Shown: positions 6,203 to 64,000, numbered from the stretch's first letter. The stretch: 64,000 nt of DNA from Lepidodermella squamata (GCA_047495785.1 JBLDXI010000001.1:2232001-2296000), one strand, 5' to 3'. Notes: generated by a model not told the origin, from the sequence alone. Program-made: numbers and translations.

Positions 6203-6568
6203 TTAATGGCGCTTCCTAGTGTGCTGCTGCAGATCGCGTTGATGCCGAAATTTGCTCGGGCATTGTTGACAAGCAAAGCGAGGTGGGCCGGATTCGTGCG
6301 TCCCCATGTGCTGAATTACGGCGCGTTTGTCTTTTAGTTGTACCGCACAAACAGGACAAGCGTTTTCAGGCACGTTTTCGAACGCGTAAGAAACGGCGGG
6401 TATTGGCTGAGAATTTGTATCAGCTAGTTTGCGTATGATGTCTTTCAGGCTTTCTAATTGTAGGATCAAGGAACTAGTAGCCGTATTTTCGCCGAATTTC
6501 TTTACGAGAGATTGCTTACACGATTCGATTTCACTCAACGCCAAGTCAAGCGTAACTACTTGAGACAT
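6203..6568 (-). CDS. Helical-hairpin/YAF/two-finger protein
   Basis: ATG 6568 (MSQVV); SYAFENVPENACPVC..HMGTHESGPPRFACQQC..HTRKRH. Confidence 0.85.
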   Translation of the reverse strand: MSQVVTLDLALSEIESCKQSLVKKFGENTATSSLILQLESLKDIIRKLADTNSQPIPAVSYAFENVPENACPVCAVQLKDKRAVIQHMGTHESGPPRFACQQCPSKFRHQRDLQQHTRKRH

Positions 6569-9211: not shown

Positions 9212-10161
9212 TCATGGGCAATTTCCGATGGTATGACTTTTCATATGCCTTGTCAGGTTAAAAGGACTGTTGTAACTTTTAGGGCATGATTTGCAATTCC
9301 ACATGACATTGTCATGCATCGACAGCTCATGAACCTTGACGCTGTTATTCGAGACAAATGATTTTCCACATGTCAAGCACGCAATTCGCAAAGACTGATG
9401 CACTCGCCTGACGTGATCATACAAGGAACTTTGATTTTCGTAAGTCCTGGAGCATTTAATGCATTCGTGGTCTCCGCGATGCACTTCTCTTACGTGCTTC
9501 TTGTAGCCTTCCATTGAGGTGCAAATCTTCCGGCAGTATTCACATTGCTGGAAAGGCGTAGGGCGATGATATCGATCCAAGTGATTTGAGAGGTATAATG
9601 AGCATAAGAATTTGACATGGCAGACGGGGCAAGTCCTGTCAGTCTCCATAGGTTGACCTATCTTATGGTTGAAAATGTTGCAGTTAAAAATCAACGAACT
9701 CACAACTCACAGCGCTTCTTGTGGTTGCGAAATCCGGATGTCGTGAAAAATGCTTTTGGACACGCAGCGCATTTGAACATGGGCGAATCGTCGTGCACAT
9801 GCATGTGTTCTCTTAGAACCTTAACCGAAATAAGCACCGCAGAGCAAATTGGACATGTGCGACTGCCAAGATGCGAATTTCTCTTTTTTTCTAAAACTGA
9901 TAATCTATTTTGAGATTGATGCTTCTTTTTTCCGTGTTGCTGCAGATCACGTCGACGGCGGAATATGCTCGGACAACTCGAGCAAGCAAAGCGAGGAGGC
10001 CCCGAGTCGTGGACAACCATGTGCATTTTCAAAATGTACAGCCTTTTGAAAGATTTGCCGCAAATCGTGCAAGTGTTACCGGAATCAGATTCCATGGTTA
10101 GGGATAATCCAGAATTGCATTTTTCGATGTTAGGTATCAGCTGATCGAATGATGGTTTCAT
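9212..10161 (-). CDS. 9-finger C2H2 gene (4+5), two exons
   Basis: MKPSFDQLIP start; HDSGPPRF, HDDSPMF and HRPTPFQQC linkers; T|GTGAGT donor at 9710. Confidence 0.85.
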
Positions 10162-10244
10162 TACGAGCGATTAATAAATCAACTAAATCACGGTAAATGG
10201 CAAGCTAAAAGTTCTCAAAAGCTGTTAATATTTTATGCAACTCG

Positions 10245-12425
10245 CTCCCTGAACCTAGGTCGCGTACCATCTGCAAGATCGCTGTCGATGCCAAACGTCG
10301 GCTCGACCAAGTGACAAAGGAAGATAAAGACAAGCCGCTCGGTGCCTGGCGCAGACCTTACAGCCCAAGCCTCGGCAAGGGCATGCTTTACGATAAGTGG
10401 CACCATCGCATCACCGCCAACCGCTGCAAACCCTGTCACCCGCAATCACTTCCAGTTGCCCGACGGAGCACGTCTGTTCGACATAACGGATACCCGGCTG
10501 CATTTAGTTCACGGAGGACATTGTCAGCCAATGCCCTGGGCTACCACGACGCTCACGCTTTCAGTTCCGATCTTATCCCTCCGCAGCCTATGAAGTACTC
10601 TGAAACGGGATCACAGCTGTCTGACACAACGGCAGACATCTTAGACAGAAAAAAATGTCAACACTTAAAATCATCCAGAGCAGTTCGATTATCAATTATT
10701 ATTACTAGCGGTCCATTTGGGCCTTCTAGGTACAACTTCGGTACAACTCTCCACTAGACGGAAGCATTTCACCACAAACAAGGTTCACTCAACTTCGACG
10801 GTCAATCAAGTCATGCAGTTACGCTCGGAGAACGCTGACATAGCGCCCTCGTATCACCGCCCGCCGTCTGGGCAGTCCCCTTCACACCTGCCTTCGTTCG
10901 ATGACCTTCGATGTCTGTTGACAGACCCCCGTCTCCCCCACCCCAGTTGTCAAGTCGTGCGTCGAGCCAACCCTTGCAACAAGCGTCGCCCAAACGTGTA
11001 AAATGGCGCGGAAGACCCGCCGCTTCCGCCCCCGACTCGTATGTCTGCTCCGACCCCCAGAAGCGCCTATCAACTACAAGTTCGTGATTATCGACCGCAT
11101 CACTGGCATGACTCGCGTGGAGCCGGAATCGGTCAAGGTTGCTCAGGTCAAGCTCTCGGCCATCTGCTACCGCCTGCCCTCCTGTTACACTGGCGACACT
11201 CTGCGCCCACTTTTCAGGTCCGAGTATATCGAGGAAATCCGCGAGGTTCCCCCGCTCCCTGGCAAACAGACGTCACCAATGGTGCTCTGTCTTCCGGCTA
11301 AGCATTACGAGGACGCGATGGCTAATGGTGTAAAGTTCCTGAATCGCCGCATATAAGGCTACAAGTTGAAAAGCAAGGGTCTCTCTCCTACCTGCCTGAA
11401 GTGCGCCGCTTACGGCCACGTCGCTGTCAATTGCTCTCCGAACAACACGCAACGACGCAGCCGTTGTGCTGCGACTTACCAGGCGATTTTCACCCGTCTC
11501 GCTGAGCCTGAAGATCGTCATTACCCCCACTGCAGTGGTGGCGGTGAGCCTCATCATTCTGGTTCATAGCGTGGCTGCCCTGCGTTCAAGACCGCCCAAG
11601 CTGAAGAGGTGGCTCGTCGCCATGCTATCACCGTCGCCCGTGAAGCGAAAGCTGCCGAGCGTGAAAAGCGTCTTCAACAAGCAAAGATTCCCGAACATCT
11701 ACGACGTGGCCCCACGCACTTACTTCCTCCTTCCTCTCGGCGGATCAAAGCCCGCTCTGTGGTCTCCCTCATCTCCTTCGTGGGTGCCTCCTTGGTGAGT
11801 GGCTCGCTCTGGATGTTGTCCCTTTCGCTGGCTCGTCTGTAGTTCGTTTTCTTACCGGCTATTGTCCGCCGACTTCGTTCTTAGTTCTTTGCTTCCTGGA
11901 ATCCGAGTTCGCTGGAGCCTCGGCCTCAGGTATTCCTCGTTTCTTTAGCGGGGTTTTCAATGGCAAGTCACCAATGGGGGTTCACAGTCGCGTGATTTCT
12001 GGAACCCTCACGGCTATTCCGCGCATCACTTCACCCGTCTCGGTCTGACTATTTTCTCTTCGTAAGCCACAGTAACCCACCTTCCCTCCCCACCCACCGC
12101 CTATCTGTCAGCTAAATATCTGTCAGCTCGACCGACAGATAATGACAGCGGCCCGGTAATTACTTCCCGGCTATGAAGCATCCGAAGAACGAGCAAGACG
12201 TAAACTCGCTAACAAGCCCTTTCAGTTTCGCCGTTCTCTAGACACAGCGGTACGCTATATAGCTCTTGAATTTAGGAATCGCCGCAGGTGCCGCGGCCGC
12301 TTTTCGGCCCCGCTGCGGGAGAGCCGATGCCTACAGCTGCCAAGGCGCTTACTCTAACAGTTTCGGTCATGTCCCTTTGCGGCCATCAACTACTCTGCAC
12401 ACGGGATTATACCTGCCTGGCACGA
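10245..12425 (+). mobile_element. Nest of decayed non-LTR retrotransposon fragments (gag/ORF1 plus probable RT-thumb piece)
   Basis: GC-rich insert; CCHC knuckle CLKCAAYGHVAVNC at about 11392, further CPHC..H..CPAF knuckle remnant; AKRRL..GAD remnant at about 10290; stops and frameshifts. Confidence 0.75.
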
Positions 12426-27627: not shown

Positions 27628-28350
27628 TCAATCAATTCCATGAAACCGCTTTCGGTGATTGGCCAAGCCAGATTCAAACGTGTAGGTGAAACCGCAACTG
27701 AGACAGGGATAACTGTTTTTGACTTCTTTCCTCGGGCGCCCACGGCCTCTTTTCGGAAATTCATCATGACGCTCGATTGATTCTTCCTTAACGTGATCGA
27801 TAACATCAAGCCGCTCGTCATCGTCGAACATCGGCTTTGTTGGTTCAAGCTCAGAACTTTCAATGGCCGAATCGTCCGTACCAATTTTGCTGTAAGAGTT
27901 CTTCGGGGGGCGGCCGCGACCGCGCTTTTGCCCGGGTACCTGAGGAATCGGATTTCTAGGTGGAGTGACTGTCTTCGCAGATTTAGGACGGCCGCGGCCT
28001 CTTTTCGGCGGCGTTTCGCCCTCGCTCGTCGCAGGCGGAGTTTCCGCTGCTGGCTTCAGTCTAGGACGGCCTCGAGCTTTTTTGATCGTTTCACGCGATT
28101 CGGAATCGCTCGAAGAAATCGACCACGAGTCCTTACTAGGCGACTCTAAAACTGAAGGTTTATCTTGAAATGAGACAACAGGCTTCGACATGGGGCTAGC
28201 GCCGGCTCTCTGCGACCTCATCAGATCGATATGATTTTCCAACATGGCGATTCGAAACGCTATTTCTTTCTTCATTTCCTCATTTCGAGATAGGAACTCT
28301 TTCCTCAAATCGGCGATGGTTTTGCCCAAGTCATCAATGATCGAATCCAT
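27628..28350 (-). CDS. Coiled coil plus four AT-hooks plus one C2H2 finger
   Basis: RGRPR, RGRGRPK, RGRGRPP, RGRGRPR; CLSC..HRKRFH. Confidence 0.88.
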   Translation of the reverse strand: MDSIIDDLGKTIADLRKEFLSRNEEMKKEIAFRIAMLENHIDLMRSQRAGASPMSKPVVSFQDKPSVLESPSKDSWSISSSDSESRETIKKARGRPRLKPAAETPPATSEGETPPKRGRGRPKSAKTVTPPRNPIPQVPGQKRGRGRPPKNSYSKIGTDDSAIESSELEPTKPMFDDDERLDVIDHVKEESIERHDEFPKRGRGRPRKEVKNSYPCLSCGFTYTFESGLANHRKRFHGID

Positions 28351-37169: not shown

Positions 37170-37700
37170 GCTATGACGCCAGCGATTCAGGCAAGCCGTC
37201 CACTTTCGACACTCAAAGGCTCGTTAGCCATGAAATACTGATATCAATCAATTAGAACTGATTTGAAAACTAAAAATCGAATGAAAATTTGCCGATTTTC
37301 ACAGACTGGTGATAATGATAGAAATATCCGAGATAGAAAAACCAATTCAAAACAAAGGCGCCGACTGCGTATAAAAGAACCGGTAGAGATAGGTAATCTG
37401 AAAAAAATTGAGCAAGTTTCCGAAATTGAACCGTTAATTTTTGAAATAATCAGCCCTGCTTGTGAACCTCGCGCAAATGGCGGAATAAACTGTGCTTCGA
37501 TGATAGAATTTTCGGACAGACCGGACAAGCCGGTGCTGCTGCTCCGCTAGCGACGTCTTTCGGAATCGAATGAATTTTCAGGTAATGACGATCTAACCCA
37601 GCTGAATTCGCCATTCTCTTCAAGCAAACTAAGCAGCGATTCGCGCTGATCGTAAGCGGTGAACCAGGCGTTTTTTCGACTGAAAGAAGCTTTTCTTCGA
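37170..37700. repeat. Dispersed duplicate of 54900-55410
   Basis: Near-identical sequence encoding VEEKLLSVEK..REVHKQG plus the downstream spacer. Confidence 0.9.
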
Positions 37701-37929
37701 CAAAGGACCTCTGGCCATCAACTATGGTGACGTAAACCCAATACACAACTGAGATAAGGATTAGGATTTTGAATGTGAGCCAGTAGCTGGCCGTCACATA
37801 TCCGTCGCAATAACAGCCCAGTTCGATCGCTGCATTAGAGCCAACATTTTCAACCCCTTGTTCCCTAAAGCTCCTGCTCGGAATAATTAATCGAATTAGC
37901 TCCCCGTTTTCATCCAAATAAAACTTCAA
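37450..37929 (-). CDS. Chimeric transmembrane plus two-finger ORF
   Basis: FYLDENGELIRLI (as in 36428), hydrophobic YWLTFKILILISVVYWVYVTIV, fingers copied from 55156; start codon unresolved. Confidence 0.55.
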   Translation of the reverse strand: MKFYLDENGELIRLIIPSRSFREQGVENVGSNAAIELGCYCDGYVTASYWLTFKILILISVVYWVYVTIVDGQRSFVEEKLLSVEKTPGSPLTISANRCLVCLKRMANSAGLDRHYLKIHSIPKDVASGAAAPACPVCPKILSSKHSLFRHLREVHKQG

Positions 37930-40918: not shown

Positions 40919-41799
40919 GAAAGCTACGACTTAACCCGGATTGGTTTCGTCCATACATAGACCCCATGATAGCGACGAATCGACATGTCTGAGAAGCGGT
41001 TTCGCTCAATTTGTGTGTAATTTCAACTTGAACTTCGTTCGCGTTTAGTTGGATACGCGTTTACATGGAATATAACAGGATACGAGCCGACTTGAGCCAA
41101 TTCATGGAAAACGCTCAGTTCCAGGTTCCAGCCTTCCAATTGGGGTTGCAATAACACGACCATTTTGTTCTATACCTAATTAATAGTCCTCGCAATCAGC
41201 ATTATTATTCTGATTATCGAGTCAACTGTAATGTCTGCTCTGCTTGAACGCCCTTACGCCGATCGCCTCGATCAAGCAGTCGCCCAAGTAAGGGCGGGGA
41301 ACATGTCCGGCGTTGTGGCCGCACGTGTCTACGGTGTCAAGAATTACACTATTTCGCGGCGCATGAAAAACGGCGATCTTCATCTCCGTGGCCGGCGGAC
41401 TCTCTTCAAACCGGAACAAGAACGGGCGATTGTGGACCGGTTGATTGTGGACCGGTTGCCCTTGACGCGTGATCGGATTCGGCAAGTCGCTTTCAAGTTT
41501 GCTGAAGAGCTGGCAGTCGAAAACCAGTTTAAAGACAGCAGAGCGAGCCAGAAATGGCTTCGCGGCTTTTTAAAGAGGCATGAAGACGTCGCGGCTCGAC
41601 GGGCTGAGACTTTGTCTTACGCGAGAGCCGCCAGTTTCACGAGGCATCGAATTTCCGAAATACCATCGAGCCATCAACCGGCGGTTAATGCAGCGGTTTG
41701 TGATGAATAATCGCCGTCGTCTTCGTCGAAAGCTACGACTTAGCCCGGATTGGTTTCGTCCATACATAGACCCCATGATAGCGACGAATCGACATGTCT
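40919..41799. repeat. 72-bp direct repeats, 40919-40990 and 41728-41799
   Basis: One mismatch between copies. Confidence 0.92.
41231..41710 (+). mobile_element. pogo/Fot1/Tigger-type transposase N-terminus (HTH-psq plus CENP-B HTH), no DDE domain
   Basis: LDQAVAQVRAGNMSGVVAARVYGVKNYTISRR; GRRTLFKPEQE; SQKWLRGFLKRH..RAETLSYARA. Confidence 0.88.
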
Positions 41800-44584: not shown

Positions 44585-44899
44585 TTAGGCTTTGCGATGT
44601 TTCTTGCGATGCTGAGCCAACCCTGGCTGTTGCCGGAAAGTTTGTCCGCAAGTTTCGCATTTGAATCGGCCGACAGGGTCGTGAACCCCCTGATGCTGTT
44701 TAAGCAGCATGGCAGTTTTAGCCGTATAAGAACAAACCGGGCATGTCAAAGGGTCTCTCTCGACTGGGTTGGCAAATTCATACGGTGCAGGCGACTTTCC
44801 AGATGTTAAATCCGTAATAATTTGCTTCAATTTTACATTTTCGGCGTTAGAATCGGCTAACCGTTGTTTTAGCAAGGCACATTCCACACAATTAGACAT
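44585..44899 (-). CDS. CxxC/coiled-coil/YxF/two-finger microprotein A1
   Basis: MSNCVEC..PYEF..DPLTCPVC..HDPVGRFKCETC. Confidence 0.9.
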   Translation of the reverse strand: MSNCVECALLKQRLADSNAENVKLKQIITDLTSGKSPAPYEFANPVERDPLTCPVCSYTAKTAMLLKQHQGVHDPVGRFKCETCGQTFRQQPGLAQHRKKHRKA

Positions 44900-45009
44900 T
44901 TTTCAACTCTCTCAGACCTATAAAAGGAAGTAAATCGATTTTCACGAATTTTCTTTTCCTCGACAGTTTTTATCAATTTACATGGAAAAATAAAAATTTC
45001 CAACAATGT

Positions 45010-45285
45010 TTAGCTGCATCGTTTGCGGTGGGAATACAAAGCTTGCCTCTGGCGGAAGCTGCTGCTGCATTTCTCGCACTTGTACCGCGCAACAGAATCA
45101 TGAGTCAGCCGGTGATTTACCAGGTACTGCCGATTTTTAGCCTTGAACGAACAAACCGGGCATTCGAGGGGATCACGCGCTACTTCACTCGCAAACTGAT
45201 AGTTGAGCGATTGTTTTTTCAATAGTTCAGCTTTCAATCGATCGATTTCGCGATCTTTCTCAATACAGCGTGGGCAATTTTCCAT
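45010..45285 (-). CDS. Microprotein A2
   Basis: MENCPRC..NYQF..DPLECPVC; second finger C2HC. Confidence 0.9.
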   Translation of the reverse strand: MENCPRCIEKDREIDRLKAELLKKQSLNYQFASEVARDPLECPVCSFKAKNRQYLVNHRLTHDSVARYKCEKCSSSFRQRQALYSHRKRCS

Positions 45286-45390
45286 CAAATTTAGCTTAAC
45301 ACGTTACTTCCTAGGGCGATTATTATTACCCGGAAATCAAATGTTTGAAAACTTTCATAAATAAGGGAAATTTAATGGTTCTCTTCAAAT

Positions 45391-45678
45391 TTACCGCCCA
45401 CCGCAAATTTTACGATGGTGGCACAGTCCGGATTGTTGGCGAAAGTTTCGATTGCACATCTCACACGTGTAACGACCAACAGGGTCGTGGATGTCCTTGT
45501 GTTGTAGCAACAGCCAGGAAGATTTCGCAGTGAACGAGCAAATCGGACAGGCGAGCGGATTTTTCGCGGTATCAGGGGCAAAATTATAGGTTGATTTCCC
45601 GGCAGACATCACCTCAATTTGCTGTCTCAATTTCGCATTTTCCGCCTTCAAAGCCTCGCAACTGGCACAAGTATTCAT
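45391..45678 (-). CDS. Microprotein A3
   Basis: MNTCASC..TYNF..NPLACPIC. Confidence 0.9.
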   Translation of the reverse strand: MNTCASCEALKAENAKLRQQIEVMSAGKSTYNFAPDTAKNPLACPICSFTAKSSWLLLQHKDIHDPVGRYTCEMCNRNFRQQSGLCHHRKICGGR

Positions 45679-45760
45679 AGTAAGGATATTGATAAGAGCC
45701 TAAAAGTTGCAATACCAATTCAACTTAAATTAACACGAAATTTTAGTTAATAAAAACGAG

Positions 45761-46087
45761 TTATTTCGAACACTTTTTACGATGGCGGGACAAGGCTTGA
45801 CTCTGTCGAAATGCAACTCCACAGGCATCACAACGGAACCTCCGAACAGGGTCATGCTTTGCCATGTGGCTTTTCAAGAGATGAAGAGATTTTGCTACGA
45901 ACGAACAGACCGAACATGTCAAAGGATCCAACGCTTCTTGAGCTGCGAAGTTGTAAGCCGGTTGATTTGACGACCTCTCAGCTTTCAATGAATCGTTTTC
46001 AAGTTTCAAGCGCGAAATCTCAACTTCTAAGGCCGCGTTTTCAGCCTCGGATGACGCTAGCTTCGCGCACCCTCGACAGTTATTCAT
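45761..46087 (-). CDS. Microprotein A4
   Basis: MNNCRGC..PAYNF..DPLTCSVC. Confidence 0.9.
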   Translation of the reverse strand: MNNCRGCAKLASSEAENAALEVEISRLKLENDSLKAERSSNQPAYNFAAQEALDPLTCSVCSFVAKSLHLLKSHMAKHDPVRRFRCDACGVAFRQSQALSRHRKKCSK

Positions 46088-46539
46088 AATACTTGGGAGA
46101 CAACGAAGACAACTTTAAATTAGAAATTAAATAGGAAAACCTAAAAAGTTGAGCGTATACGCAAAATTCTAACAAAATGAACCGAAGATTTAGAAGATCG
46201 GAAAATGAAAACGTTCAGGAGAACTGAATAGTGCGTCCCAGATGTTGCGCAACCATCCAATCTTCAATTTTCAAATCAATTGAGTCTTTTCCGCCTACTT
46301 TCCTTGGGTCCACTCAAAATCCAAAATACAAACGATGGAAGCTTGTAGAAAATAAAAAATTAAGTATCAATCAACTAAGCTTCAATTTTTTCATTCGGAA
46401 ATCAAATTGTTGATCCATCAAAATGAAAGAGTCAGGTTTCAAAACGGTTCCACCTCTTTTCATTGAAAATACTCATTTAATCTTATTCGCACCGCAACGC
46501 GAAGTAGTTAAAAATAAAACCTTCAATGCTTGTGACTGA

Positions 46540-46857
46540 TCATTTCCCGCAGCGTCTTAGATGATAACTTAAGCCTTGATGCTGTTGATAGGCTTTCCCG
46601 CAGGTCACACAACGAAACCTCCGAACAGGATCATGCTTCGCCATGTGGCTCCTTAGAAGATTGGCCGATTTTGCTACAAACGAGCAGATCGAACACGTTA
46701 GAGGATCCAACGCCTCTGGTGTCGCGAAGTTGTAGGCCGGTTGATTTGTCGTTCTCTCGGCTTTTAACGACTCGTTTTCTTGCTTTAAACGAGAATTTTC
46801 TACCTGCAAAGCCGCTATTTCTGCCTCGAAAGACGCACACCCCAAGCAGTTATTCAT
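46540..46857 (-). CDS. Microprotein A5
   Basis: MNNCLGC..PAYNF..DPLTCSIC. Confidence 0.9.
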   Translation of the reverse strand: MNNCLGCASFEAEIAALQVENSRLKQENESLKAERTTNQPAYNFATPEALDPLTCSICSFVAKSANLLRSHMAKHDPVRRFRCVTCGKAYQQHQGLSYHLRRCGK

Positions 46858-47151
46858 ATATATAATTCGAGAAAATCGAGGAATTTCTAAGTAGATTCGA
46901 TGAGAAATAAAGTTAGGAAAACTTGAATCTTCATATTTAACATCAAATTAATTGAAGAGAAAGATTCAAAAAATCTGGTCAATAGAATACAGAAATTGGA
47001 AATCATAAATAATGAACAAGGCAACTATTTTTTCGGATTTTCTTCAGCAGGTCAAACATTTTTCCGAGAAAACAAGAAGTGCCTAAATTCGTTAAATTTC
47101 CGTTGAAAATGAATACAAATTCAAATTACTGTCATCAATGCATGTGACTGA

Positions 47152-47481
47152 TCATTTCGCGCAGCCCCTTCTCAGATGTTTATTTACGCTTTGCTGCTGT
47201 TGATAGGTTTTCCCGCAGGTCACGCATTCGAACCTCCGAACGGGATCATGCTTGGCCATGTGGCTTTTTAAGAGGTGAAAGGATTTTGCTACAAACGAAC
47301 AGACCGAACATGTCAAAGGATCCAAAGCTTCCGGAGTCGCGAAGTTATAGGCAGGTTGACTTGACGTTCTCTCAGCTTTCAACGAATCGTTTTCTCGCTT
47401 CAAACGCAAATTTTCCACTTTCAGGGCCGCGTTTTCAGCCTCGAATGACGAAAGCTTCACACAACCACGACAGTTGTTCAT
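47152..47481 (-). CDS. Microprotein A6
   Basis: MNNCRGC..PAYNF; ATG 47481. Confidence 0.9.
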   Translation of the reverse strand: MNNCRGCVKLSSFEAENAALKVENLRLKRENDSLKAERTSSQPAYNFATPEALDPLTCSVCSFVAKSFHLLKSHMAKHDPVRRFECVTCGKTYQQQQSVNKHLRRGCAK

Positions 47482-47888
47482 AATACTTAGAGACAAAGGA
47501 GAAAAACTTTCCGAAATTAGAAATTAAATACGAAATCCTAAAAATTAGAGGGTGTAAATATCGAAAAAATGAATCTAAGATTCCGACGATCAAAAAATGA
47601 AAATGTTCAGGTGAACGGAATAGCTACAGCGTGCCCAATAAGCTGCATTATTTTCGTTCTCATAATTTCTATTTTCAAGCAATTCAGTAATTTCCAACTC
47701 TAATTTTCTAATTAGCCATTCTGATAAATTGTCCGCGAATTTTTTAGTTAATTATGGGTCACACTGAAAATCCCAAAGATATGATATCATAGAGCAAGGT
47801 TATGAAACGGTTCGATCACTTTTCGCTGAAAATATTCTTCTTCGCGCCGTGTTAAAAATAGAACCATGTCCTCAATGCTAGTGACTGA

Positions 47889-48209
47889 TCATTTCGCGCA
47901 GCCCTTCCTTAGATGATTACTTAGGCCTTGCTGCTGCTGAAAAGAATTCCCGCAGGTCACACATTTGAACCTCCGAACAGGATCATGCTTCGCCATGTGG
48001 CTCTTCAGAAGGTAGACTTTCTTCGCTACGAACGCGCAGATCGAACACGTTAACGGATCCAATGCTTCTGGAGTCGCGAAGTTGTAGGCCGGCTGATTTG
48101 ACATTTTTTCAGCTTTCAACGACTCGATTTCTCGCTTTAGACGCGAATTTTCGACTTTTAGGGCCCCGTTTTCTGCCTCGAAGTTCACACAACCACGACA
48201 TTTATCCAT
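47889..48209 (-). CDS. Microprotein A7
   Basis: MDKCRGC..PAYNF. Confidence 0.9.
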   Translation of the reverse strand: MDKCRGCVNFEAENGALKVENSRLKREIESLKAEKMSNQPAYNFATPEALDPLTCSICAFVAKKVYLLKSHMAKHDPVRRFKCVTCGNSFQQQQGLSNHLRKGCAK

Positions 48210-48508
48210 GATAATTCGAGAAAAACAACTAATTTCCTATATGGAAATTTTCGAAATGAGAAGCAAAAAATGGATTGCAAATCCCAATTTTTATCAGATG
48301 TAACATCGAATTAACGAACCAATCAACCGAATGAATTATCCGCATTGAAGTTGTTTGCCTACAGAAGATCAATTATTATCGAAATCAACTATGATTTTTT
48401 CATATTTTCCGATTTTAGTAGTGACTTCGAAGAGCGCTGTTCCGCATCACTTGACTTATAAATAAAATTTACCAGTAAAAGGTCGTCGAAACTTGTGATT
48501 AAAAGCGA

Positions 48509-48828
48509 TTAATTCGCACAGCCCTTTCTAAGATGACCGTTCAAGTTTTGACGCTGCTGATACGTTTTCCCGCAATTCTCGCAACGGAACCTCCGAAAAG
48601 GGTCATGCCTAGCCATATGGCTCTTGAGAAGGTAAGCAGTCTTCGCCACAAACGAGCAGACCGAAAAGTCAACGGATCTACGGCTTCTTGAGCTGCGAAG
48701 TTGTAGGCCGGTTGGTAGGACGATTTTTCGGCTCGTAGCAACTCAATTTCACGATTCAAACGCGAGATCTCTGCCTTCAAAGAGGCGTTTGCCGTCTCTA
48801 GTGAAGCGCAGCCAAGACAGTTACTCAT
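48509..48828 (-). pseudogene. Microprotein A8, frameshift at the first Cys of finger 1
   Basis: 1-nt deletion near 48665; the other frame ends HLRKGCAN*. Confidence 0.8.
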
Positions 48829-48893
48829 TGAAAAAACTAGAAAATATACAAATAATACAGATTTTTCTCGAAATTTTTCAAGAGAACGTCAAA

Positions 48894-49187
48894 TCAGCCG
48901 CTATGTTGAACTTTGCGATGTCGATAGTAGCCATGGGGTTGACGAAAAATCTTGCCACAATATTCGCACTTGTAACGTCCGACGGGGTCATGAATGGCCT
49001 GGTGGTGTTTCAGCGACAGTGCGCTTTTGGCTGTAAACGAGCAAACCGGGCATGTCAGAGGGTCACTAGCGACTTCAGGTTTGAAACTATAGGCTGAATT
49101 TCCATCAGTCATCGACTCAATCTGCAACTTCAATCGCTCAATTTCAGCTTTCAACGAGGCATTAGTAACACAACCAGGGCAGCTCAT
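48894..49187 (-). CDS. Microprotein A9
   Basis: MSCPGC..AYSF..DPLTCPVC; ATG 49187. Confidence 0.9.
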   Translation of the reverse strand: MSCPGCVTNASLKAEIERLKLQIESMTDGNSAYSFKPEVASDPLTCPVCSFTAKSALSLKHHQAIHDPVGRYKCEYCGKIFRQPHGYYRHRKVQHSG

Positions 49188-49556
49188 ATTACCGAAAAAT
49201 GCAAAAAAACTAAAAATTCGAACTTCAAATTCAATTTTAAAGAAATATAGACCCAGGCGTTGTTCAACCATTCGAATCTTGTAATTATTTTCAGGAAATG
49301 AGTATTTTCCTAAAATCGAATAATTTAATTGATACCGATGGATACGTTTCATACTAACCCATTGCATTATGAATTTTTCTGACCATGAAACCTCTCAACC
49401 AAGTTTTTTCTTCACTAAGTCAAATTATTCAACTATACAATCAAAGAGCAAGATATCAAAACGGTTCGATCACTTTTTATCGAAAAATCGCGAAACTCAT
49501 AACGCCACGATCCGTTTCAACAAATTAAACGAGTAAAAATGAAAATAATGTCCTCA

Positions 49557-50033
49557 TTACTTTTCGCTGATCATTTTGCAGCCCTTCCTCTTATGATAAC
49601 TCAAGTCTTGAGGCTGTTTGAAGGTTTCCCCGCAGGTCTTGCAACTGAACTTCCCGACGGGATCGTGCCTCCACATGTGGTTCTTCAGGCGGGAACCGGA
49701 TTTTCCTACGTACGAACAGATCGAACACGTCCAACGATTCAATGCTTTCGGGGCTGCCGAATTGAAGGCCGGTTGATTCGACGTTCTCACAGCTTGCAAA
49801 GACTCGTTTTCTAGCTTCAAACGCGAATTCTCCGCTTTCAACGCTAACGACTCATTCTCTTGCTTTCAACGAGAATTCTCCACTTTCAAAGCCGCGATTT
49901 CGGCCTCGAAAGACGGCGCAAGACTAAGAGGGCCACTAGCGACTTCAGGTGCAACAGCACAGGCTGAATTTCCGTCAGCCATCGACTCAATCTGCAACTT
50001 CAATCGCGCAATTTAAGTTCCAGAGCAGCTCAT
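49557..50033 (-). pseudogene. Microprotein A10, chimeric and disrupted
   Basis: A9-like 5' part fused to an A5-like coiled coil with stops; fingers intact. Confidence 0.75.
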
Positions 50034-50092
50034 ATTTACGAAAAAGTTCAAGAAATAACTAAAAATTCGAACGATAGATATCAAGATGAATT

Positions 50093-50395
50093 TTAACGGT
50101 GGACAGTTCTAAGATGTCTCAACGAGTTTTGCCTGTGATGAAACGTTTTCCCGCAATTTTCGCAGCTGAACTGGCCAACCGGTTCGTGCTTCACCTTGTG
50201 GCTTTTCAGCAGTGCGACACTTTTAGCTGTAAACGAGCAAACAGGGCACGTCAAAGGGTTAAGAGCTTCCTGGGCCGCGAACTGATAATTCGGCTGAGAC
50301 GTAGAACTCTGTTTCAGAGTCAAAATTTCAGCTTCCAACTCCGAGATTCTTCGTTTCAACGACACGTTTTCGATACAGCCTTTACAGTTACTCAT
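50093..50395 (-). CDS. Microprotein A11
   Basis: MSNCKGC..PNYQF..NPLTCPVC. Confidence 0.9.
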   Translation of the reverse strand: MSNCKGCIENVSLKRRISELEAEILTLKQSSTSQPNYQFAAQEALNPLTCPVCSFTAKSVALLKSHKVKHEPVGQFSCENCGKTFHHRQNSLRHLRTVHR

Positions 50396-50441
50396 CTTAC
50401 AAATAATCCGCCTAAAAATTATCCAATCGAAGGTTTATTCA
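50396..50441 (-). promoter_or_regulatory. Intercistronic-type spacer: AATAAA overlapping the stop, then a TTTTTAG acceptor
   Basis: TGAATAAA..TTTTTAG|16 nt|ATG within 43 nt. Confidence 0.6.
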
Positions 50442-50735
50442 TGCATGAGCAATTTTACGATGACGGTATAAACTCTGGCCCTGGCGAAAGACGTTACCAC
50501 AAATTTCACATTTGAAACGAGCAACCGGGTCATGAACGGTCTGATGCTGCTTTAGCAGCTTTACAGTCTTCGCAGTGAATGAACAAACAGGACAGGACAA
50601 CGGGTCTCGAGCGACTTCGGCAGTATATGCGTAAGGGGAAGATTTTTCGGCAAGCAACGTTTCTATTTGCCGCTTCAAATTCGCATTTTCGGACTTCACG
50701 CTGGCCAACTCAACGCAACCGGAGCACTTATTCAT
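50439..50735 (-). CDS. Microprotein A12
   Basis: MNKCSGC..PYAY..DPLSCPVC. Confidence 0.9.
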   Translation of the reverse strand: MNKCSGCVELASVKSENANLKRQIETLLAEKSSPYAYTAEVARDPLSCPVCSFTAKTVKLLKQHQTVHDPVARFKCEICGNVFRQGQSLYRHRKIAHA

Positions 50736-50811
50736 CTTAAAATCGACTAAATATTCAAAAAAAAATAGAACTACGGGAGTTCGAATTTTTCATAAGCGAA
50801 TTTGTTCAAAA

Positions 50812-51114
50812 TCAAGCCGAACATTTCCTCTGATGGCTGTACATAGCAGGCTCTTGACGAAATTTCTTTCCGCAAAACTTGCAGGAAAACCGTTCGACAG
50901 AGTCGTGGATAGGCATGTGTTGAAGGAGGTGCTTCTTCAATTTAAACGCCCTCAAGCAGACCTTACAAGTGAGAGGGTCGATAACGGGAGGCGGCGCATA
51001 TTCGTAATTCGATGAAACAGATGAAGAGGCCAACTGGGCCTCGAGGCGCGAAACTTTCGCTATTTCTTCGGACAATCGCTTTTCTAATATAGCGCAATTT
51101 TTGCAACTATTCAT
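50812..51114 (-). CDS. Microprotein A13
   Basis: MNSCKNC..NYEY..DPLTCKVC. Confidence 0.9.
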   Translation of the reverse strand: MNSCKNCAILEKRLSEEIAKVSRLEAQLASSSVSSNYEYAPPPVIDPLTCKVCLRAFKLKKHLLQHMPIHDSVERFSCKFCGKKFRQEPAMYSHQRKCSA

Positions 51115-51502
51115 TTTTTCAATAAAAATTTCCAATAGACTCGAAAATAAAATTAAAAAATCAAAAATTGAAATATAATCGGAACATAATTTTCCTAGTT
51201 TTCATTCTCTCAGTTGCATTTTTAGCTGGCAAGTTATCGTTCATATTCGTCCGTTTCTGGCTCCGCGTTTCTAGGATATCAGAAAACTTGGGACCTCAGC
51301 TAACTTTGTTCACAGATTTCGCACTATCGAAAAAAATCAAAATATGATTACAAAATCACAGAAAACTATAACCATAAAAACCTAATTACGATATCAAAAT
51401 CAGGAGGGTACGACTTTTTTCGAAAATTATCTGTTCAACTAGCTTCCCAAGAACAATATTTTTCATGTGATGGACAATATTCCATGAAAATTTTAGTTCC
51501 GA

Positions 51503-51805
51503 TCAATTCTGGCATTTTTTCTGGTGAGCGTACATAGTAGTGTCCTGACGATATTTCCTGCCGCAAAACTTGCACGAGAAACGCGCGACTGAATCGTGGA
51601 CAGGCATGTGCTGCTCGAGGTGATGTTTCGTTTTGAATACCTTCAAACAAATGCTACACGATAACGGATCGACCTGAGGCGGTGGGACAAACTCGTAATT
51701 TGACGAATTCGAGGACGTTTTCAACTGTTCTCTAAGACGCGCATTAGCCGCTCTTTCTTCCGAGAGTTCCTTCTCAAGCACAGCGCATTTTTTACAACTA
51801 TTCAT
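51503..51805 (-). CDS. Microprotein A14
   Basis: MNSCKKC..NYEF..DPLSCSIC. Confidence 0.9.
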   Translation of the reverse strand: MNSCKKCAVLEKELSEERAANARLREQLKTSSNSSNYEFVPPPQVDPLSCSICLKVFKTKHHLEQHMPVHDSVARFSCKFCGRKYRQDTTMYAHQKKCQN

Positions 51806-51878
51806 AATTGGATAAATCTATAAATAAATCCCACAAAATTAATGGATAATTTAATGTCCCGTGAAAAGGAAGATAACA

Positions 51879-52175
51879 CTAATTCTGGCAAGTTTTTGAA
51901 TGCTTACTCAAACTTGGCCCATGACGAAAAGTTTTACCGCACAAGTTGCAACGAAATCGGCCAACAGCATCGTGACTCGGCTTGTGCTGATTGAGCAACG
52001 GCTTGGTTTTGAAGACTTTCAAGCAAATCGGGCAGGTGAGGGGATCAACGGCTGGGTCCGGGGTGAATTGATAGCTGCTGATCGACGGTGGTCCGTTTTT
52101 CAGGCGATCGATTTCAGCCAGAGCCTCCTTCAACTTCACCTCCAGTTGTTCACATCCGGAGCAATTTTTCATCAT
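51879..52175 (-). CDS. Microprotein A15
   Basis: MMKNCSGC..SYQF..DPLTCPIC. Confidence 0.9.
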   Translation of the reverse strand: MMKNCSGCEQLEVKLKEALAEIDRLKNGPPSISSYQFTPDPAVDPLTCPICLKVFKTKPLLNQHKPSHDAVGRFRCNLCGKTFRHGPSLSKHSKTCQN

Positions 52176-52253
52176 TTTAGGATAAATTATCTAAAATTGA
52201 AATTCAATTCAATTACAATGCAAAATTAATAGGTTATGAATTATGAAGGAATT

Positions 52254-52547
52254 TCAAGCCATGCCACACGACTTTTGATGTAGATACATGCTAGGTCGTT
52301 GGCGAAAAATTTTACCACAATATTTGCAACTGAATCGTCCGACAGGGTCGTGAACAGGCGCGTGCTGGTTGAGCAAATGTTTCGATTTGAATACCTTGAA
52401 GCAGACCAGACAGCTGAGCGGATTAACTTCGGACGCTGTAGCGAATTCGTACACTGTAGCATTCGAGTTTTCTTTCAAGCGCGAATTTTCAGCTAAGGCT
52501 TCGCGCAATTTGATGTCGAGTTTACCACAATTAGAGCATTTTTTCGT
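52254..52547 (-). CDS. Microprotein A16 with ACG at the start position
   Basis: ACG AAA AAA TGC TCT AAT TGT (xKKCSNC) in frame with ORF 52254-52508. Confidence 0.7.
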   Translation of the reverse strand, partial: TKKCSNCGKLDIKLREALAENSRLKENSNATVYEFATASEVNPLSCLVCFKVFKSKHLLNQHAPVHDPVGRFSCKYCGKIFRQRPSMYLHQKSCGMA

Positions 52548-53738: not shown

Positions 53739-54134
53739 TCACAAAGCGCCATGAATCGACTTTATATGCCGCTTTACAGCTTGATATTGGCGATACGTTT
53801 TCCCACATTGGTCACATTTGAATTTCGACTCTGGAACGTGCAGAAACATGTGTTGTTTCAACGACCATGCGGTCTTGAGCTGACTGAAGCACACAGGACA
53901 TTTTAATGGATTATCCGCAATTGAATTCGGGGCGAACTGATATGAAGAAGGCTGTGGAGGGCAAGGCTCTGGTTTCAATTGCTCGAGTTCAGCTCGCAAC
54001 CTCGCAATTTCGGCCTGGGCATCGACGAGCTGTTTACGGAGCATAGCTGATTCAGATTCTAAAAAGAAGCCAGTATTTTTCTCGTAAAAATCGTACAAAA
54101 AATCATTGACAAAAATACCAGCTTTCCGCATCAT
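53739..54134 (-). CDS. Coiled-coil/YQF/two-finger protein
   Basis: LVDAQAEIARLRAELEQL..SYQF..NPLKCPVC; start may be 54044. Confidence 0.85.
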   Translation of the reverse strand: MMRKAGIFVNDFLYDFYEKNTGFFLESESAMLRKQLVDAQAEIARLRAELEQLKPEPCPPQPSSYQFAPNSIADNPLKCPVCFSQLKTAWSLKQHMFLHVPESKFKCDQCGKTYRQYQAVKRHIKSIHGAL

Positions 54135-55155: not shown

Positions 55156-56594
55156 TCAGCCCTGCTTGTGAACCTCACGCAAATGGCGGAATAAATTGCG
55201 CTTCGATGATAGAATTTTCGAGCAGACCGGACAAGCCGGGGCTGCGGCTCCGCTAGCGACGTCTTTCGGGATCGAATGAATTTTCAGGTAATGACGATCT
55301 AACCCAGCTGAATTCGCCATTCTCTTCAGGCAAACTAAGCAGCGATTCGCGCTGATCGTAAGCGGCGAACCAGGCGTTTTCTCGACTGAAAGAAGCTTTT
55401 CTTCAACAACAGGAGCCCGAGCAGGCTTCACTGGCGTGGCGTTAACGACCGGTGTAGGAGGTAGTACCAGAGCCGACGTCATCGGGCTCATTTTCGGATG
55501 TTTCGGCGGCCGACCGCGTCCTCGTTTAACGAGCAAATCCGTCGAGGCTAAAATTTTATTCGATATTCTTTCATTTCAAGAGCATTAAAACTCACTTGAA
55601 GATGCGCCAATAGGTACATTTGGGGACACTGCAGGTTTCTTCACTTCAGCAACGCTAGGCTTCTCGGTGATTTTATCCATAGACCTGCTATCTCTCAACC
55701 TACTAGCAGGTGGACTACGCTTAGCTGGTGTTCTTGCGATTGGAGTGGCCTTCGCCACGTTATCATCAGCCGGTTTGAGCCTGGCTTTCGGGGCTGGAGT
55801 GATTGATGCCATCGGGGCAAAAGCAGGGCTAAAATACGAAACGCCGGGAGAAAACAGTGGGACAGGCGTCGCGAACGCCATAGGGGTTGAAGAAACGACG
55901 TTATTCGCGCCTCTGGGCGAGACTTTTCTCAGCGACAAAGCAGCAATGGCCCTTTCAGCGTCGTCAATCGCCACGTGTTGAGCGGCCAGCAAACGATGTA
56001 ACATCATCAGTTCGACTTTTCCATCGCTATTGTCTAATCAAAGGAGAAATGTCAGCAAAGAAAAATTCCTCCTTAAAATTTGAAGAACTAAAAAATTTCA
56101 CCATTATTTTGATATTAGGGTTCCAAACCCAATTTGACGCCCCAAATCAATATTTTCTTAGTATCAAATTTTCCCAAAACTTTCGACAATTTACGGTATA
56201 TTCTGGCCTTCAGATCCGATTTATTCCAAGTATCGATTTTAAAAATCAGTGATTTTTATATCGGCATTCCTGAAAGCCAACAAAAAATTTCCAACTGAAA
56301 TACAAAATCTTGGGGTATTTTTCATCGTTCCAGAAGAATAAGGCCGATATCGCAAATAATTTCAGCTAAAACCCAAACTTCAAGGCAAATATTTCCAAGT
56401 AAAAATCGATTTCACCTTTGACCCTTTCACCTTCTAGTAGATTACCAGATACTCGGCTTCAACTTACAATAAAGACCTCGCCGAATCTTCAAATTCAGCG
56501 ACTTGATCTCGCTCATAATCTGTTCCACTGAAAATAAATGCCAAAAATAAAAAACCTCGTTCTAACAGCTTAATAGATTTTCAATACCTGACAT
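55156..56594 (-). CDS. Pro/Ser/Thr-rich protein with AT-hook and two fingers, multi-exon
   Basis: A|GTGAGT..TTTTAG|CC joins 55585-56007 to 55156-55536; KRGRGRPPK; exons upstream of 56035 are tentative. Confidence 0.75.
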
Positions 56595-61985: not shown

Positions 61986-62519
61986 GAAATAATAACTCTA
62001 AAAATTGAATAGTTTCTATATTCCAACTTCTGGAGGAACTATAAACTAAGCCGTGAAATAAACGTGAAATAAACGAGCAAACACCCCATTCAAGAAAAAG
62101 CCAAGAAAACTATAAGCCCCAAGTTTTAGCTCCACTAAGCGAACCCTTAAGGCATCCCTGCGAAGAAGGGTTCGAGCTACAGCCCGGATACCATAAGATT
62201 CAAACCCTCGGAAAATTCCAAATTTTACGAAGGAACCGATACTTCCGAAAATTCTAAAACCTACCGCAATTTCTAAGCCAAAAACTCCCAATGCTACCAA
62301 AACCCGCTTGGAAAAGAGGCGATTCGCGCTAGACCTTCGACGATACGTCTTCGGACGTATTGGAAGCCAATGAAATCAGCCAACTCAAATAATAGCCACT
62401 CACTGCAGACGAGTTGGCGGGGTTGAATCTCCACCTTCCACTGGATAAGCTCAAGGCGGCTCCGTTGCAGGAGGAGGGCGACGTATTCCAATTGTTGTCA
62501 GACTGAACTCCCTGTACCT

Positions 62520-63660
62520 CGTCGTTCGCTACAGCGGTTCTTCGAGCAGACCCAGCACCGCTACGCGAACAACGCCGTCCGTTTCGTTCTCCCGTCCGCG
62601 AAGCCGCTTCTCTGCTAACCCGCTGTCCCGTTCTATGCTGGCCCAGGCTTCCTCAAGGTCCTTTGCCCACCCTCGGTGTTCAAGATCTCATCCAGCTTTT
62701 CCGCTCTTGGTCTATCGCATAACTTGTCTGGTCGTCCTGTTTCTTTCTTTTGTTCTTTTTTTTTTCCTTGCCTTTCCTGTCCGGGGTATCGCCGGCCTTC
62801 GCCATTCGCCAGTCGGCCCTTCACCGCGCCCGCGTTTGTAGCCACCCCCGCCTCGGCCTCCTGGTCTACCAGACCCTGATCCGCCCGCTAGCCGAATTCG
62901 GCTGTCCTGCGTTCGCCAACTGTCATCCGCGCTTGTTTGCGCAGCTACTTGCCATCGAAAAGCGGGCTGTGAAGTCTATCCTCGGCCTTGTCCGCGGGAC
63001 ATCCGACGCCGTCTACGACGCCCAGGTCGCCGCCGCGTTTCCGACGTTCACGCCGCTCGGCGTACGGTTGGGGGAGCTGGCTTTCCACTTCTTCAACCGT
63101 GCGCTGGAGAACGGTGGTCCCGTTGGGCTCGCACCTTCCCTTGTCGACCCTGCTAGGAGCCAGTCCGTTGCCTGCTGTCCGCCCCTCGCTCCAGCGTCCC
63201 CCAGTTCTGCAGTCCGGTCCTTGGGTAGCTGATTTGCCGGTTGGCTTCCTCCCTTAGCCTGCCGCTCGGTCTCCTGCTCGTCGCAACCGTCGTGGTGTCT
63301 CCTTTGCCTAACGCCGTCTTGCTCGGCGGACGTCGCGGGTGTGAGTCCCGGGCCGTCTGGGCTGCCTCCATGTTTAGTTTCTCTTCCTTTTGTGTGTTTT
63401 TACCACTAGGTTCGTCTTGTTCCCTCACTGGTCGCTCCATGTGCCTGCGGTGAGCTGGCAGCGGTTGGGCCACGGGCGGCGGCACAATTCTATCGGCGGC
63501 CCGTGTGCTGGTGTTCTCGGATGGGCGGCGAGTGTTGCCGCTGCTGCCTGTCCCTTTACTGTTCATACTTTTTTGCCTGGTTTTGTTCCTTTCTGGATGT
63601 GCATGATAACCCACGTTTAGCCTGCGGGCTGGTGGAATACGATCGAGGCTTGTAAGGCCG
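62520..63660 (+). mobile_element. Non-LTR ORF2 remnants (C-terminal Cys domain plus post-RT region)
   Basis: LLVYQTLIRPLAEFGCPAF..LLAIEKRAVKSILG matches the LINE post-RT motif; LLTRCP remnant at about 62610; GC-rich. Confidence 0.8.
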
Positions 63661-63888
63661 TGCCTTTTCCAATATTTTCGAGGGTAAATATTGTCTATGA
63701 CCCTTACCCAACTTATCTTGCTTTCCCGTAATTAATCGTAAACAATCGTAATTAATTGCTAAGGTAAGAACGAAAAGAAAGGATTTGCGTTCGTAAAAAA
63801 TTCATTTACGAAAAATTGATAACAGATAGACATTGAGGTAAAAATGTCCAAACGAACCATAAATCCAATCGCCAACATTTCCAGATCT

Positions 63889-64000
63889 TCATGGATGGCT
63901 GGTTTTAACATGCCTCCTCAATGATCGATTAGCTCGGTAAGACGCGCCGCACAAGTCGCATTTAAACTGAGGAGGTTCCACTGAGTGAACTTCGGCAATG
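63889..64000 (-). CDS. B8, 3' part only (runs off the right edge)
   Basis: IAEVHSVEPPQFKCDLCGASYRANRSLRRHVKTSHP*. Confidence 0.8.
   Translation of the reverse strand, partial: IAEVHSVEPPQFKCDLCGASYRANRSLRRHVKTSHP

Follow-up and report, generated by a model that had tools for sequence, protein, structure and literature searches.

Expanded families of C2H2 zinc-finger proteins are usually defined by their N-terminal module, such as KRAB, SCAN, BTB or ZAD. A tandem array of small genes at positions 44585-52547 of a 64,000-nucleotide (nt) stretch of the Lepidodermella squamata genome (GCA_047495785.1 JBLDXI010000001.1:2232001-2296000; this whole stretch is referred to as the window, and positions are counted from its first letter) encodes proteins of about 100 amino acids (aa) in which two zinc fingers are preceded by a CxxC motif, here called the cap, and a leucine-rich helix. 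This raises the question of what such an N-terminus does. In a preliminary description of the locus, the proteins had been regarded as possible combinatorial dimeric DNA readers. The answer at which we arrive, and to which as a whole we allow slightly less than an even chance, is that the array represents a lineage-specific tandem family of intronless ~100-aa C2H2 genes, embedded in a larger same-strand, operon-like zinc-finger cluster, whose products would act as zinc-stapled, mostly self-specific zipper dimers.

Composition of the array and the shared protein plan

Listing the open reading frames (ORFs) and searching the 64-kb window with the copies by tblastn yielded 16 consecutive units lying head-to-tail on the minus strand, with intergenic gaps of 43-452 nt (43-110 nt for the shortest spacers). 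The 16 tandem units of ~100 aa reported in the preliminary description were recovered, and its figure of about 14 intact paralogs has to be lowered to 13 (ORFs of 91-109 aa); the remaining units are a frameshifted copy (copy 8), a degenerate chimera (copy 10) and a copy with an ACG start (copy 16). In the following list, spacing denotes the number of residues from the second cap cysteine to the anchor leucine of the zipper, a-layers are the residues at successive heptad positions a, and clades A and B are copies 13-16 and 1-12, respectively.

Copy 1, 44585-44899 (-): intact, 104 aa; CxxC cap; zipper a-layers L/N/I; fingers C2H2 and C2H2; Pfam zf-C2H2 38.7 bits
Copy 2, 45010-45285 (-): intact, 91 aa; shortest zipper, spacing 10; second finger C2HC
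Copy 3, 45391-45678 (-): intact, 95 aa; short zipper, spacing 10; second finger C2HC
Copy 4, 45761-46087 (-): intact, 108 aa; young clade; a-layers N/I/N; spacing 20; second finger C2HC
Copy 5, 46540-46857 (-): intact, 105 aa; reference for numbering and for the AlphaFold2 model; a-layers I/N/N; spacing 17; second finger C2HC
Copy 6, 47152-47481 (-): intact, 109 aa; a-layers N/N/N; spacing 20; second finger C2HC with H-x4-C
Copy 7, 47889-48209 (-): intact, 106 aa; a-layers N/N/I; spacing 17; second finger C2HC with H-x4-C
Copy 8, 48509-48828 (-): pseudogene; one frameshift directly after DPLT, both halves otherwise recognisable by three-frame translation
Copy 9, 48894-49187 (-): intact, 97 aa from the conserved Met (M-S-CxxC); spacing 13; second finger C2H2
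Copy 10, 49557-50033 (-): chimeric pseudogene with 2 stops; copy-9-like head without the second cap Cys joined to a copy-5-like zipper and fingers; YxF and DPL lost
Copy 11, 50093-50395 (-): intact, 100 aa; central g:e' pair swapped (R:E); spacing 13; second finger C2H2
Copy 12, 50439-50735 (-): intact, 98 aa; 43 nt upstream of copy 11; second finger C2H2
Copy 13, 50812-51114 (-): intact, 100 aa; clade A; central g:e' pair swapped (K:E); finger 1 with canonical x3-F; second finger C2HC
Copy 14, 51503-51805 (-): intact, 100 aa; clade A; second finger C2HC
Copy 15, 51879-52175 (-): intact, 98 aa; clade A; second finger C2HC
Copy 16, 52254-52547 (-): open frame covering T-K-K-CxxC, zipper and fingers; start position occupied by ACG instead of ATG; a start-codon pseudogene, or else a gene with weak near-cognate initiation

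The 13 intact copies were aligned and residues numbered according to copy 5. All follow one plan: M-x(1-3)-CxxC, a leucine zipper of 2.5-4 heptads (3-5 heptads of coiled coil had been proposed before, which proved somewhat too long), YxF, a C2H2 finger, an HDPVxRF linker and a C2HC or C2H2 finger, the second finger being C2HC in nine copies and C2H2 in four. Invariant throughout the alignment are M1, C4, C7, L24, Y42, P52, L53, C55, C58, K63, L68, H71, H75, V78, C83, C86 and H99, and the distance from Y-x-F/Y to the first finger cysteine is exactly 13 residues in all copies. Every motif listed in the preliminary description (cap, leucine heptads, YxF, PLxC finger, linker and the often-C2HC second finger) was found in this alignment, with variation to (D/N)PL(T/S/E/A)C at finger 1 and H(D/E)(P/S/A)Vx(R/Q)(F/Y) at the linker. 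The finger half carries a net charge of +5 to +8; the N-terminal part is near neutral (-2 to +2).

Selective maintenance of the copies

Comparison of the copies by the Nei-Gojobori method demonstrated that synonymous sites are saturated in 73 of 78 pairs, with the motif residues invariant all the same. Both cap cysteines are likewise invariant while their codons alternate between TGT and TGC at each position. Measured against this saturation and the use of both codons, the observed conservation is far beyond chance. The cap is kept in the 13 intact copies as well as in copies 8 and 16, and is lost only in the decayed copy 10. In copies 4-7, the only young and unsaturated clade, the ratio of nonsynonymous to synonymous substitution (dN/dS) is 0.13-0.19, and on this ground the array ORFs are taken to be independently translated, selectively maintained, intronless functional genes.

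That the array might instead be decaying, non-functional duplicated DNA, which owes its motifs to recent copying only, is suggested by damage in three of the 16 units. This explanation is extremely improbable and already contradicted by the substitution pattern: structural residues stayed invariant in spite of synonymous saturation, the young clade shows the low dN/dS just mentioned, and the start methionine and the position of the stop are conserved. The 13 intact copies share an invariant start Met, and their stop follows 1-6 residues past the last ligand. On these two features, together with acceptor-like sites before the ATGs (see below), we also reject the reading of the ORFs as exons of one large gene.

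The N-terminal helix as a putative leucine zipper

The zipper register was set with the invariant leucine at position d. In clade B the d positions are occupied by Leu, Leu and Leu or Met, the leucine of the central heptad being invariant, and Asn, Ile, Leu or Val occur at positions a. Of 14 copies, 11 carry E:K or E:R as their central g:e' pair and one carries A:R; the polarity of this pair is swapped in copy 11 (R:E) and copy 13 (K:E), which belong to different clades, indicating two independent swaps. Repulsive central pairs were found in none of the 14 copies, a degree of complementarity reached by 1.1% of shuffles. Residues i and i+5 make no contact within one helix, and their covariation is the classical g-e' signature of a parallel dimeric coiled coil, as in bZIP zippers. 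Leucine at d, Asn/Ile toggling at a and complementary g-e' pairs with two charge swaps therefore point to a parallel dimeric leucine zipper as the likely nature of the N-terminal helix. The Pfam matches of this region, to bZIP_1, HALZ, TSC22 and DivIC, are weak and sub-threshold; in composition they are in line with such a zipper.

The a-layers read N-I-N in copy 4, I-N-N in copy 5, N-N-N in copy 6, N-N-I in copy 7 and N-I-I in copies 8, 9 and 11. The N/I toggles are single-base changes (AAY to ATY or the reverse), with some copies differing also at the third base (ATA in copy 5). All three a columns vary among copies 4-7 compared to 40% of columns overall, which is suggestive only (p about 0.06).

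To score heteropairs, simple bZIP rules were applied in which Asn opposite an aliphatic residue, or like charges at g-e', count as a clash. Only four of 78 heteropairs were free of clashes, and none of these four shares the cap-to-zipper spacing. The a-layer Asn pattern, the g-e' polarity and the spacing from cysteine to zipper differ between almost all paralogs, so self-specific dimers are to be expected, and mostly self-specific homodimers appear more likely than a combinatorial heterodimer code. The bZIP-like code of heterodimers put forward in the preliminary description is, by the same counts, unlikely. Comparable behaviour has been described for Drosophila ZAD domains, which form self-specific homodimers and heterodimerise only among close relatives (PMC7913770).

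The same helix could also be a docking site for a common partner, for instance a co-repressor or chromatin factor, while the two fingers and YxF would bind DNA as a monomer and the CxxC would take part in a heterotypic zinc clasp with that partner or play no part in the structure. Unaided DNA binding by two fingers and an N-terminal extension is known from Tramtrack, SWI5 and ADR1, and the array proteins lack an effector domain, so that a partner would be needed for regulatory output; moreover, heterotypic zinc clasps exist, such as CD4/CD8-Lck (PMC12198760). A common partner predicts a conserved interface, yet positions a and g/e toggle between N and I and between opposite charges as for self-recognition, and indels alter the zipper length by whole helical turns. 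We regard docking as unlikely and proceed with the self-recognising zipper.

The CxxC cap

The cap has the common sequence M-x-x-C-x-G-C at the start of the helix. The spacing from its second cysteine to the anchor leucine takes only the values 10, 13, 17 or 20 residues, which are whole helical turns. They place the cap cysteine on the leucine face; among 15 copies, 10 have it at a and five at e, and in 12 the third residue past the second cysteine is Leu or Phe. Conservation across the 13-copy alignment revealed no further conserved spare Cys or His in the chain, so an intramolecular four-ligand zinc site at the cap is ruled out by ligand count.

A parallel in-register dimer would bring two caps together and cluster four cysteines, which makes a shared metal site geometrically reasonable. 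Intermolecular zinc sites built from paired Cys motifs have precedent (PMC9569753, PMC12198760). Several of the zippers look too weak to hold alone, the three a layers of copy 6 being all Asn and the zippers of copies 2 and 3 comprising only ~2.5 heptads, and a staple would therefore make functional sense. A shared interchain Zn(Cys)4 would be the most economical reading; a disulfide or a Cu/Cd bis-thiolate are plausible alternatives. Tentatively, and aware that this broader proposal may well fail, we suggest that the cap and the short Asn-rich zipper together form a previously undescribed metal-dependent dimerisation module for C2H2 transcription factors: a Zn(Cys)4 staple that would make dimerisation, and hence DNA binding, zinc- or redox-gated, with a zipper code of each paralog's own (Asn layers, g-e' polarity, cap spacing) insulating neighbours in the array.

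The register data of the cap fit equally well with zipper dimers that have no structural metal and in which the N-terminal Cys pair is a redox or metal sensor, gating dimer stability or DNA binding through interchain disulfides or through Cu(I), Cd or Hg bis-thiolates as in MxCxxC metallochaperones. The M-x-x-C-x-G-C context resembles the MxCxxC loop-helix of Atx1/Atox1-type proteins and the thioredoxin-type CxxC, and a cysteine at or near position a of a parallel zipper can link the chains by a disulfide, as known from tropomyosin and engineered GCN4 peptides. The nucleus and cytosol are reducing and zinc-buffered, however, and four clustered thiolates would be expected to take up zinc; the model contains no ferredoxin-like HMA fold, and Pfam and ESM Atlas gave no sequence relationship to metal-sensor families. 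A sensor is rather unlikely, with a chance still large enough to be taken seriously.

Cys pairs within the first seven residues, followed by hydrophobic or basic residues, also resemble the motifs of PSD-95 and GAP-43, and the MxxCxxC could accordingly be a dual S-palmitoylation site acting as a membrane tether. This is very improbable, as acylation requires neither the strict x2 spacing nor a helical-face register with a zipper, and what follows in the protein is a basic module of tandem zinc fingers, as is typical of DNA binders in the nucleus. The zinc staple remains our preferred interpretation of the cap.

The zinc-finger pair

Both fingers of all 13 intact copies conform to the ligand pattern C-x2-4-C-x12-H-x3-5-H/C with invariant ligands, and copies 1, 3, 5, 12 and 15 score above the 25.2-bit cutoff of Pfam PF00096. 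The core position +4 of the helix is an invariant Leu in finger 1; in finger 2, eight of 13 copies have Leu and the others Val, Met, Tyr or Ser. The inter-finger linker, H-DPVxRFx-C, has the seven residues of canonical tandem fingers, in a sequence unlike TGEKP. In a profile search of the Protein Data Bank (PDB) sequences, profile positions 48-101 aligned without gaps to the DNA-bound tandem fingers of ZNF568, PRDM9, CTCF and Zif268, and positions 1-47 had no match. The AlphaFold2 monomer model of copy 5 (mean predicted local distance difference test, pLDDT, 82.8) consists of a long helix from residue 5 to 38 followed by two beta-beta-alpha fingers. Foldseek placed ZBTB10 ZF1-2 on DNA as the top PDB structural match (root-mean-square deviation, rmsd, 1.8 A over 53 columns; template modelling score, TM, by target 0.74-0.80), followed by the two-finger clusters of SALL4 and ZNF217 on DNA; overall, DNA-bound two-finger modules matched at an rmsd of 1.7-2.5 A. 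These results support a geometry of the canonical DNA-binding tandem type.

The most variable columns of the whole protein include +2 of finger 1 and +1 and +6 of finger 2. Among copies 4-7, the proportion of nonsynonymous differences (pN) amounts to 0.30 in the recognition helices compared to 0.10 in the scaffold. Positive selection on these helices is unsupported, as dN/dS at contact positions is ~0.27 and raised only relative to the scaffold.

The contact residues are Ser/Thr at -1 and Leu at +3 in finger 1, and Gln at -1 and Gly, Ala or Ser at +3 in finger 2; the core Phe of finger 1 is shifted in copies 1-12. Since these contact residues are somewhat atypical, DNA binding by the finger pair is likely, not assured. 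The fingers could be protein- or RNA-binding modules instead, for example with finger 1 and the YxF strand as a dimerising C2H2 unit like those lately described from Drosophila, or as a ubiquitin-binding finger. Such a role would accommodate the finger-1 contacts, the shifted Phe and the conserved upstream Y-x-F, and it gains from sub-threshold Pfam matches to zf-C2HE and UBZ-type models and from the finding that C2H2 domains with an adjacent beta-strand are able to dimerise (bioRxiv 10.1101/2025.09.04.674178). We nevertheless consider it quite unlikely in view of the seven-residue linker, the gapless alignment to DNA-bound fingers, the strongly basic charge, the concentration of variation in the recognition helices and the AlphaFold2 model, which predicts no strand at YxF. 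DNA binding is thus retained as the probable function of the finger pair.

Relatives of the array and organisation of the cluster

Among 10 copies searched against Pfam, KRAB, ZAD, BTB and SCAN gave no match at E<=1, only C2H2-type models being recognised; this agrees with the preliminary description, in which these domains were not recognisable and the architecture was not recognised as that of a named family, as no named N-terminal domain is recognisable. A word-indexed search of 5.8 billion sequences, confined to proteins of 58-184 aa, returned no match for copy 5, and a 13-sequence profile against the same size class of that collection returned just two generic multi-finger proteins without the N-terminal module. 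Exact look-up of nine copies, and of the Mi-2-like ORF mentioned below, found none of them in the collection, and a metagenome scan with the pattern DPLTCPVC gave 37 pattern matches, of which 0 were confirmed. In the ESM Atlas, the whole protein retrieved generic C2H2 clusters only, and residues 1-46 retrieved nothing above 0.74 and no meaningful look-alike. Foldseek against the AFDB clusters, Swiss-Prot and the PDB detected finger-pair matches only and no match at the level of the architecture (TM <0.5 by query). An exhaustive search of representative sequences with the full-length profile listed 150 matches, all of them poly-zinc-finger proteins of 943-5807 aa with 11-56 finger stretches each; most of their best stretches cover only profile positions ~40-103 and few start further N-terminally, so that this search is uninformative on the N-terminal module. 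The family is probably lineage-restricted, as judged from collections from which the source proteome is absent.

Within the window, at least 55 small C2H2 ORFs lie on one strand, the minus strand, across the whole 64 kb. The closest relative outside the array is:

53739-54134 (-): 131 aa; helix, YQF, NPLKC finger and second finger; without the N-terminal CxxC cap

The N-terminal helix and finger 1 of this sister gene score 29.8 bits against the Pfam zf-C2HE cutoff of 30.1, and the unit of YxF and finger 1 may be an extended zf-C2HE-type finger; the assignment was not used, since this best score falls under the cutoff. Five further cap-less relatives sampled from the window (57631, 59068, 60042, 60575 and 6203) possess an N-terminal helical region, YxF and two fingers; the cap-less relatives span the group at 57.6-61.4 kb and gene 6203-6568. 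In a maximum-likelihood tree, the array and 53739-54134 form one clade with support of 99/98, and the array splits into clades A and B; monophyly of the array is not resolved in the tree, which shows a three-way fork. The simplest reading would be a single gain of the cap after 53739-54134 had branched off, followed by its retention in every non-decayed descendant.

A T-rich-AG acceptor-like motif occurs within 70 nt upstream of seven of 14 start codons, many of them at 15-56 nt, compared to 12% of random windows, and canonical poly(A) signals are mostly absent from the array spacers. The spacing and the acceptor-like motifs would fit spliced-leader trans-splicing of a polycistronic, operon-like transcript.

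Proposed mode of action

We propose that the zipper forms a parallel in-register dimer, mostly with itself, and that the two caps meet at its N-terminal end, where their four thiolates would staple the weak Asn-rich zipper, most probably by one shared Zn(Cys)4, alternatively by disulfides. With its two two-finger modules the dimer would then engage a bipartite DNA site of ~2 x 6 bp. Divergence between paralogs would lie mainly in the recognition helices, which presumably set DNA specificity, and in the zipper code, which may insulate partners from one another.

Several observations weigh against this proposal. The g-e' covariation depends on just two swap events, and the zipper of clade A is weaker, with Glu or Ala at one d position. 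The heptad register of the cap is not strictly fixed (position a or e), and residues 1-10 reach a pLDDT of only 67 in the AlphaFold2 model, which is a monomer model; that the chains dimerise and that the cap binds metal is what we infer from sequence. As cap-less relatives exist, the cap is, on present sequences, an add-on and not the basis of the family, and thus inessential to the basic design. Finally, the contact residues of both fingers are not those of typical strong readers.

Should the proposal hold, the array family would add to the known N-terminal modules a minimal one, a Cys-capped leucine zipper of ~35 residues. A true interchain zinc site would be among very few natural intermolecular Zn(Cys)4 clasps and the first employed to stabilise the zipper of a transcription factor; should no such clasp exist, the array would represent an ordinary lineage-specific zinc-finger expansion with an unusual N-terminus. 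The 13 paralogs of ~100 aa constitute a compact natural experiment, of a size that suits peptide synthesis, NMR and all-by-all interaction assays. They allow one to ask whether Asn/Ile toggling, charge swaps and indels of whole turns are the means by which duplicated dimeric DNA binders avoid cross-talk as the helices that read DNA diverge.

Other features of the window

The surroundings of the array contain the following further features; a search against Rfam found nothing.

~7-32 kb: two alternating gene types, one starting MKPSFDQLIP with HxSGPPRF linkers, the other with HRPTPFQQCEYC
2585-4147 (-): intronless ORF of 520 aa with PHD, chromodomain and N-terminal helicase region, ending within the ATPase domain; only ~34% identical to animal CHD3/4/5 (Mi-2)
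10001-12000 and 62001-64000: GC-rich blocks (0.53 vs ~0.43 elsewhere) with plus-strand ORFs without Pfam match
27628-28350 (-): ORF of 240 aa in which one C2H2 finger follows several AT-hook motifs of the GRP type, an architecture unlike the rest of the cluster; Pfam AT_hook 23.8 bits for the full sequence (cutoff 17.4), no single stretch significant
37450-37929 (-) and 55156-55536 (-): C-terminal ~80 residues near-identical, a two-finger segment starting VEEKLLSVEKTPGSPL
41231-41710 (+): ORF within a GC-rich block (40-44 kb); above-cutoff Pfam matches to HTH_psq and Tc5-transposase DNA-binding domains

The likeness of 37450-37929 to 55156-55536 indicates a putative recent segmental duplication across the array. 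The ORF at 41231-41710 is probably a pogo/Tigger-like transposon insertion interrupting the cluster just upstream of the array, and the GC-rich blocks at 10001-12000 and 62001-64000 may be further insertions.

Comparison with known systems

Of the systems with a metal clasp, the Rad50 hook, the CD4/CD8-Lck clasp and metal-bridged Atox1 are similar in that two cysteines per chain could form one tetrathiolate near a coiled coil. The analogy to the Rad50 hook, drawn in the preliminary description, is structurally poor: the CxxC of Rad50 sits at the apex of an antiparallel coiled-coil hairpin, whereas that of the array proteins occupies residues 4-7 at the extreme N-terminus of a presumably parallel zipper, without a preceding helix, the AlphaFold2 helix beginning at residue 5, and neither sequence nor fold relates the two. 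Zn(Cys)4 sites formed between chains are uncommon, and their stability can be very high (PMC9569753, PMC5093744, PMC12198760). With HMA/Atx1-like metallochaperones the array proteins have only a similar local MxCxxC motif in common, as the model shows a single long helix in place of the beta-alpha-beta-beta-alpha-beta fold and HMA has no Pfam match.

The zipper resembles those of bZIP and HD-Zip proteins in its Leu at d, Asn or aliphatic residues at a and complementary E/K at g/e, with Asn placement and g-e' charges as a specificity code. Unlike in bZIP proteins, no basic region precedes the zipper (only M-x-x-CxxC), contact to DNA would come from the C-terminal fingers, and the zipper is shorter and richer in Asn; the bZIP_1 score of 17.6 bits lies below the Pfam cutoff of 27.6, and the proteins are not bZIP members. 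The dipteran 'CGEx' dimerising C2H2 proteins are comparable insofar as finger 1 of the array has the upstream Y-x-F at the fixed 13 residues, which may be an added strand; the array proteins differ in having no CGEx motif and in carrying the finger within a canonical tandem pair, and AlphaFold2 models no strand there.

The ZAD domain is a module of ~75-90 aa that binds its own zinc by two CxxC pairs in one chain. Arthropod ZAD-C2H2 genes share with the array the lineage-specific tandem expansion and an N-terminal, Cys-containing dimerisation module, and homodimer preference is predicted here from the zipper codes. The array differs in having a single CxxC and a plain helix, with no ZAD match at E<=1, and any zinc would be interchain. 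Drosophila Tramtrack combines a dimerisation domain with a two-finger design. Like ZBTB10 ZF1-2 and Tramtrack of the BTB/POZ class, the array proteins have an N-terminal dimerisation element, here a putative one, followed by only two canonical C2H2 fingers, a design in which the dimer gains specificity and affinity. They differ from this class in lacking BTB, for which they substitute a Cys-capped zipper of 2.5-4 heptads in a total of ~100 aa with no other region, and the finger identity of ~35% is generic C2H2 similarity. By analogy, the functionally closest known design would be that of a dimerisation domain with two fingers, and the closest evolutionary behaviour that of the ZAD-C2H2 expansion.

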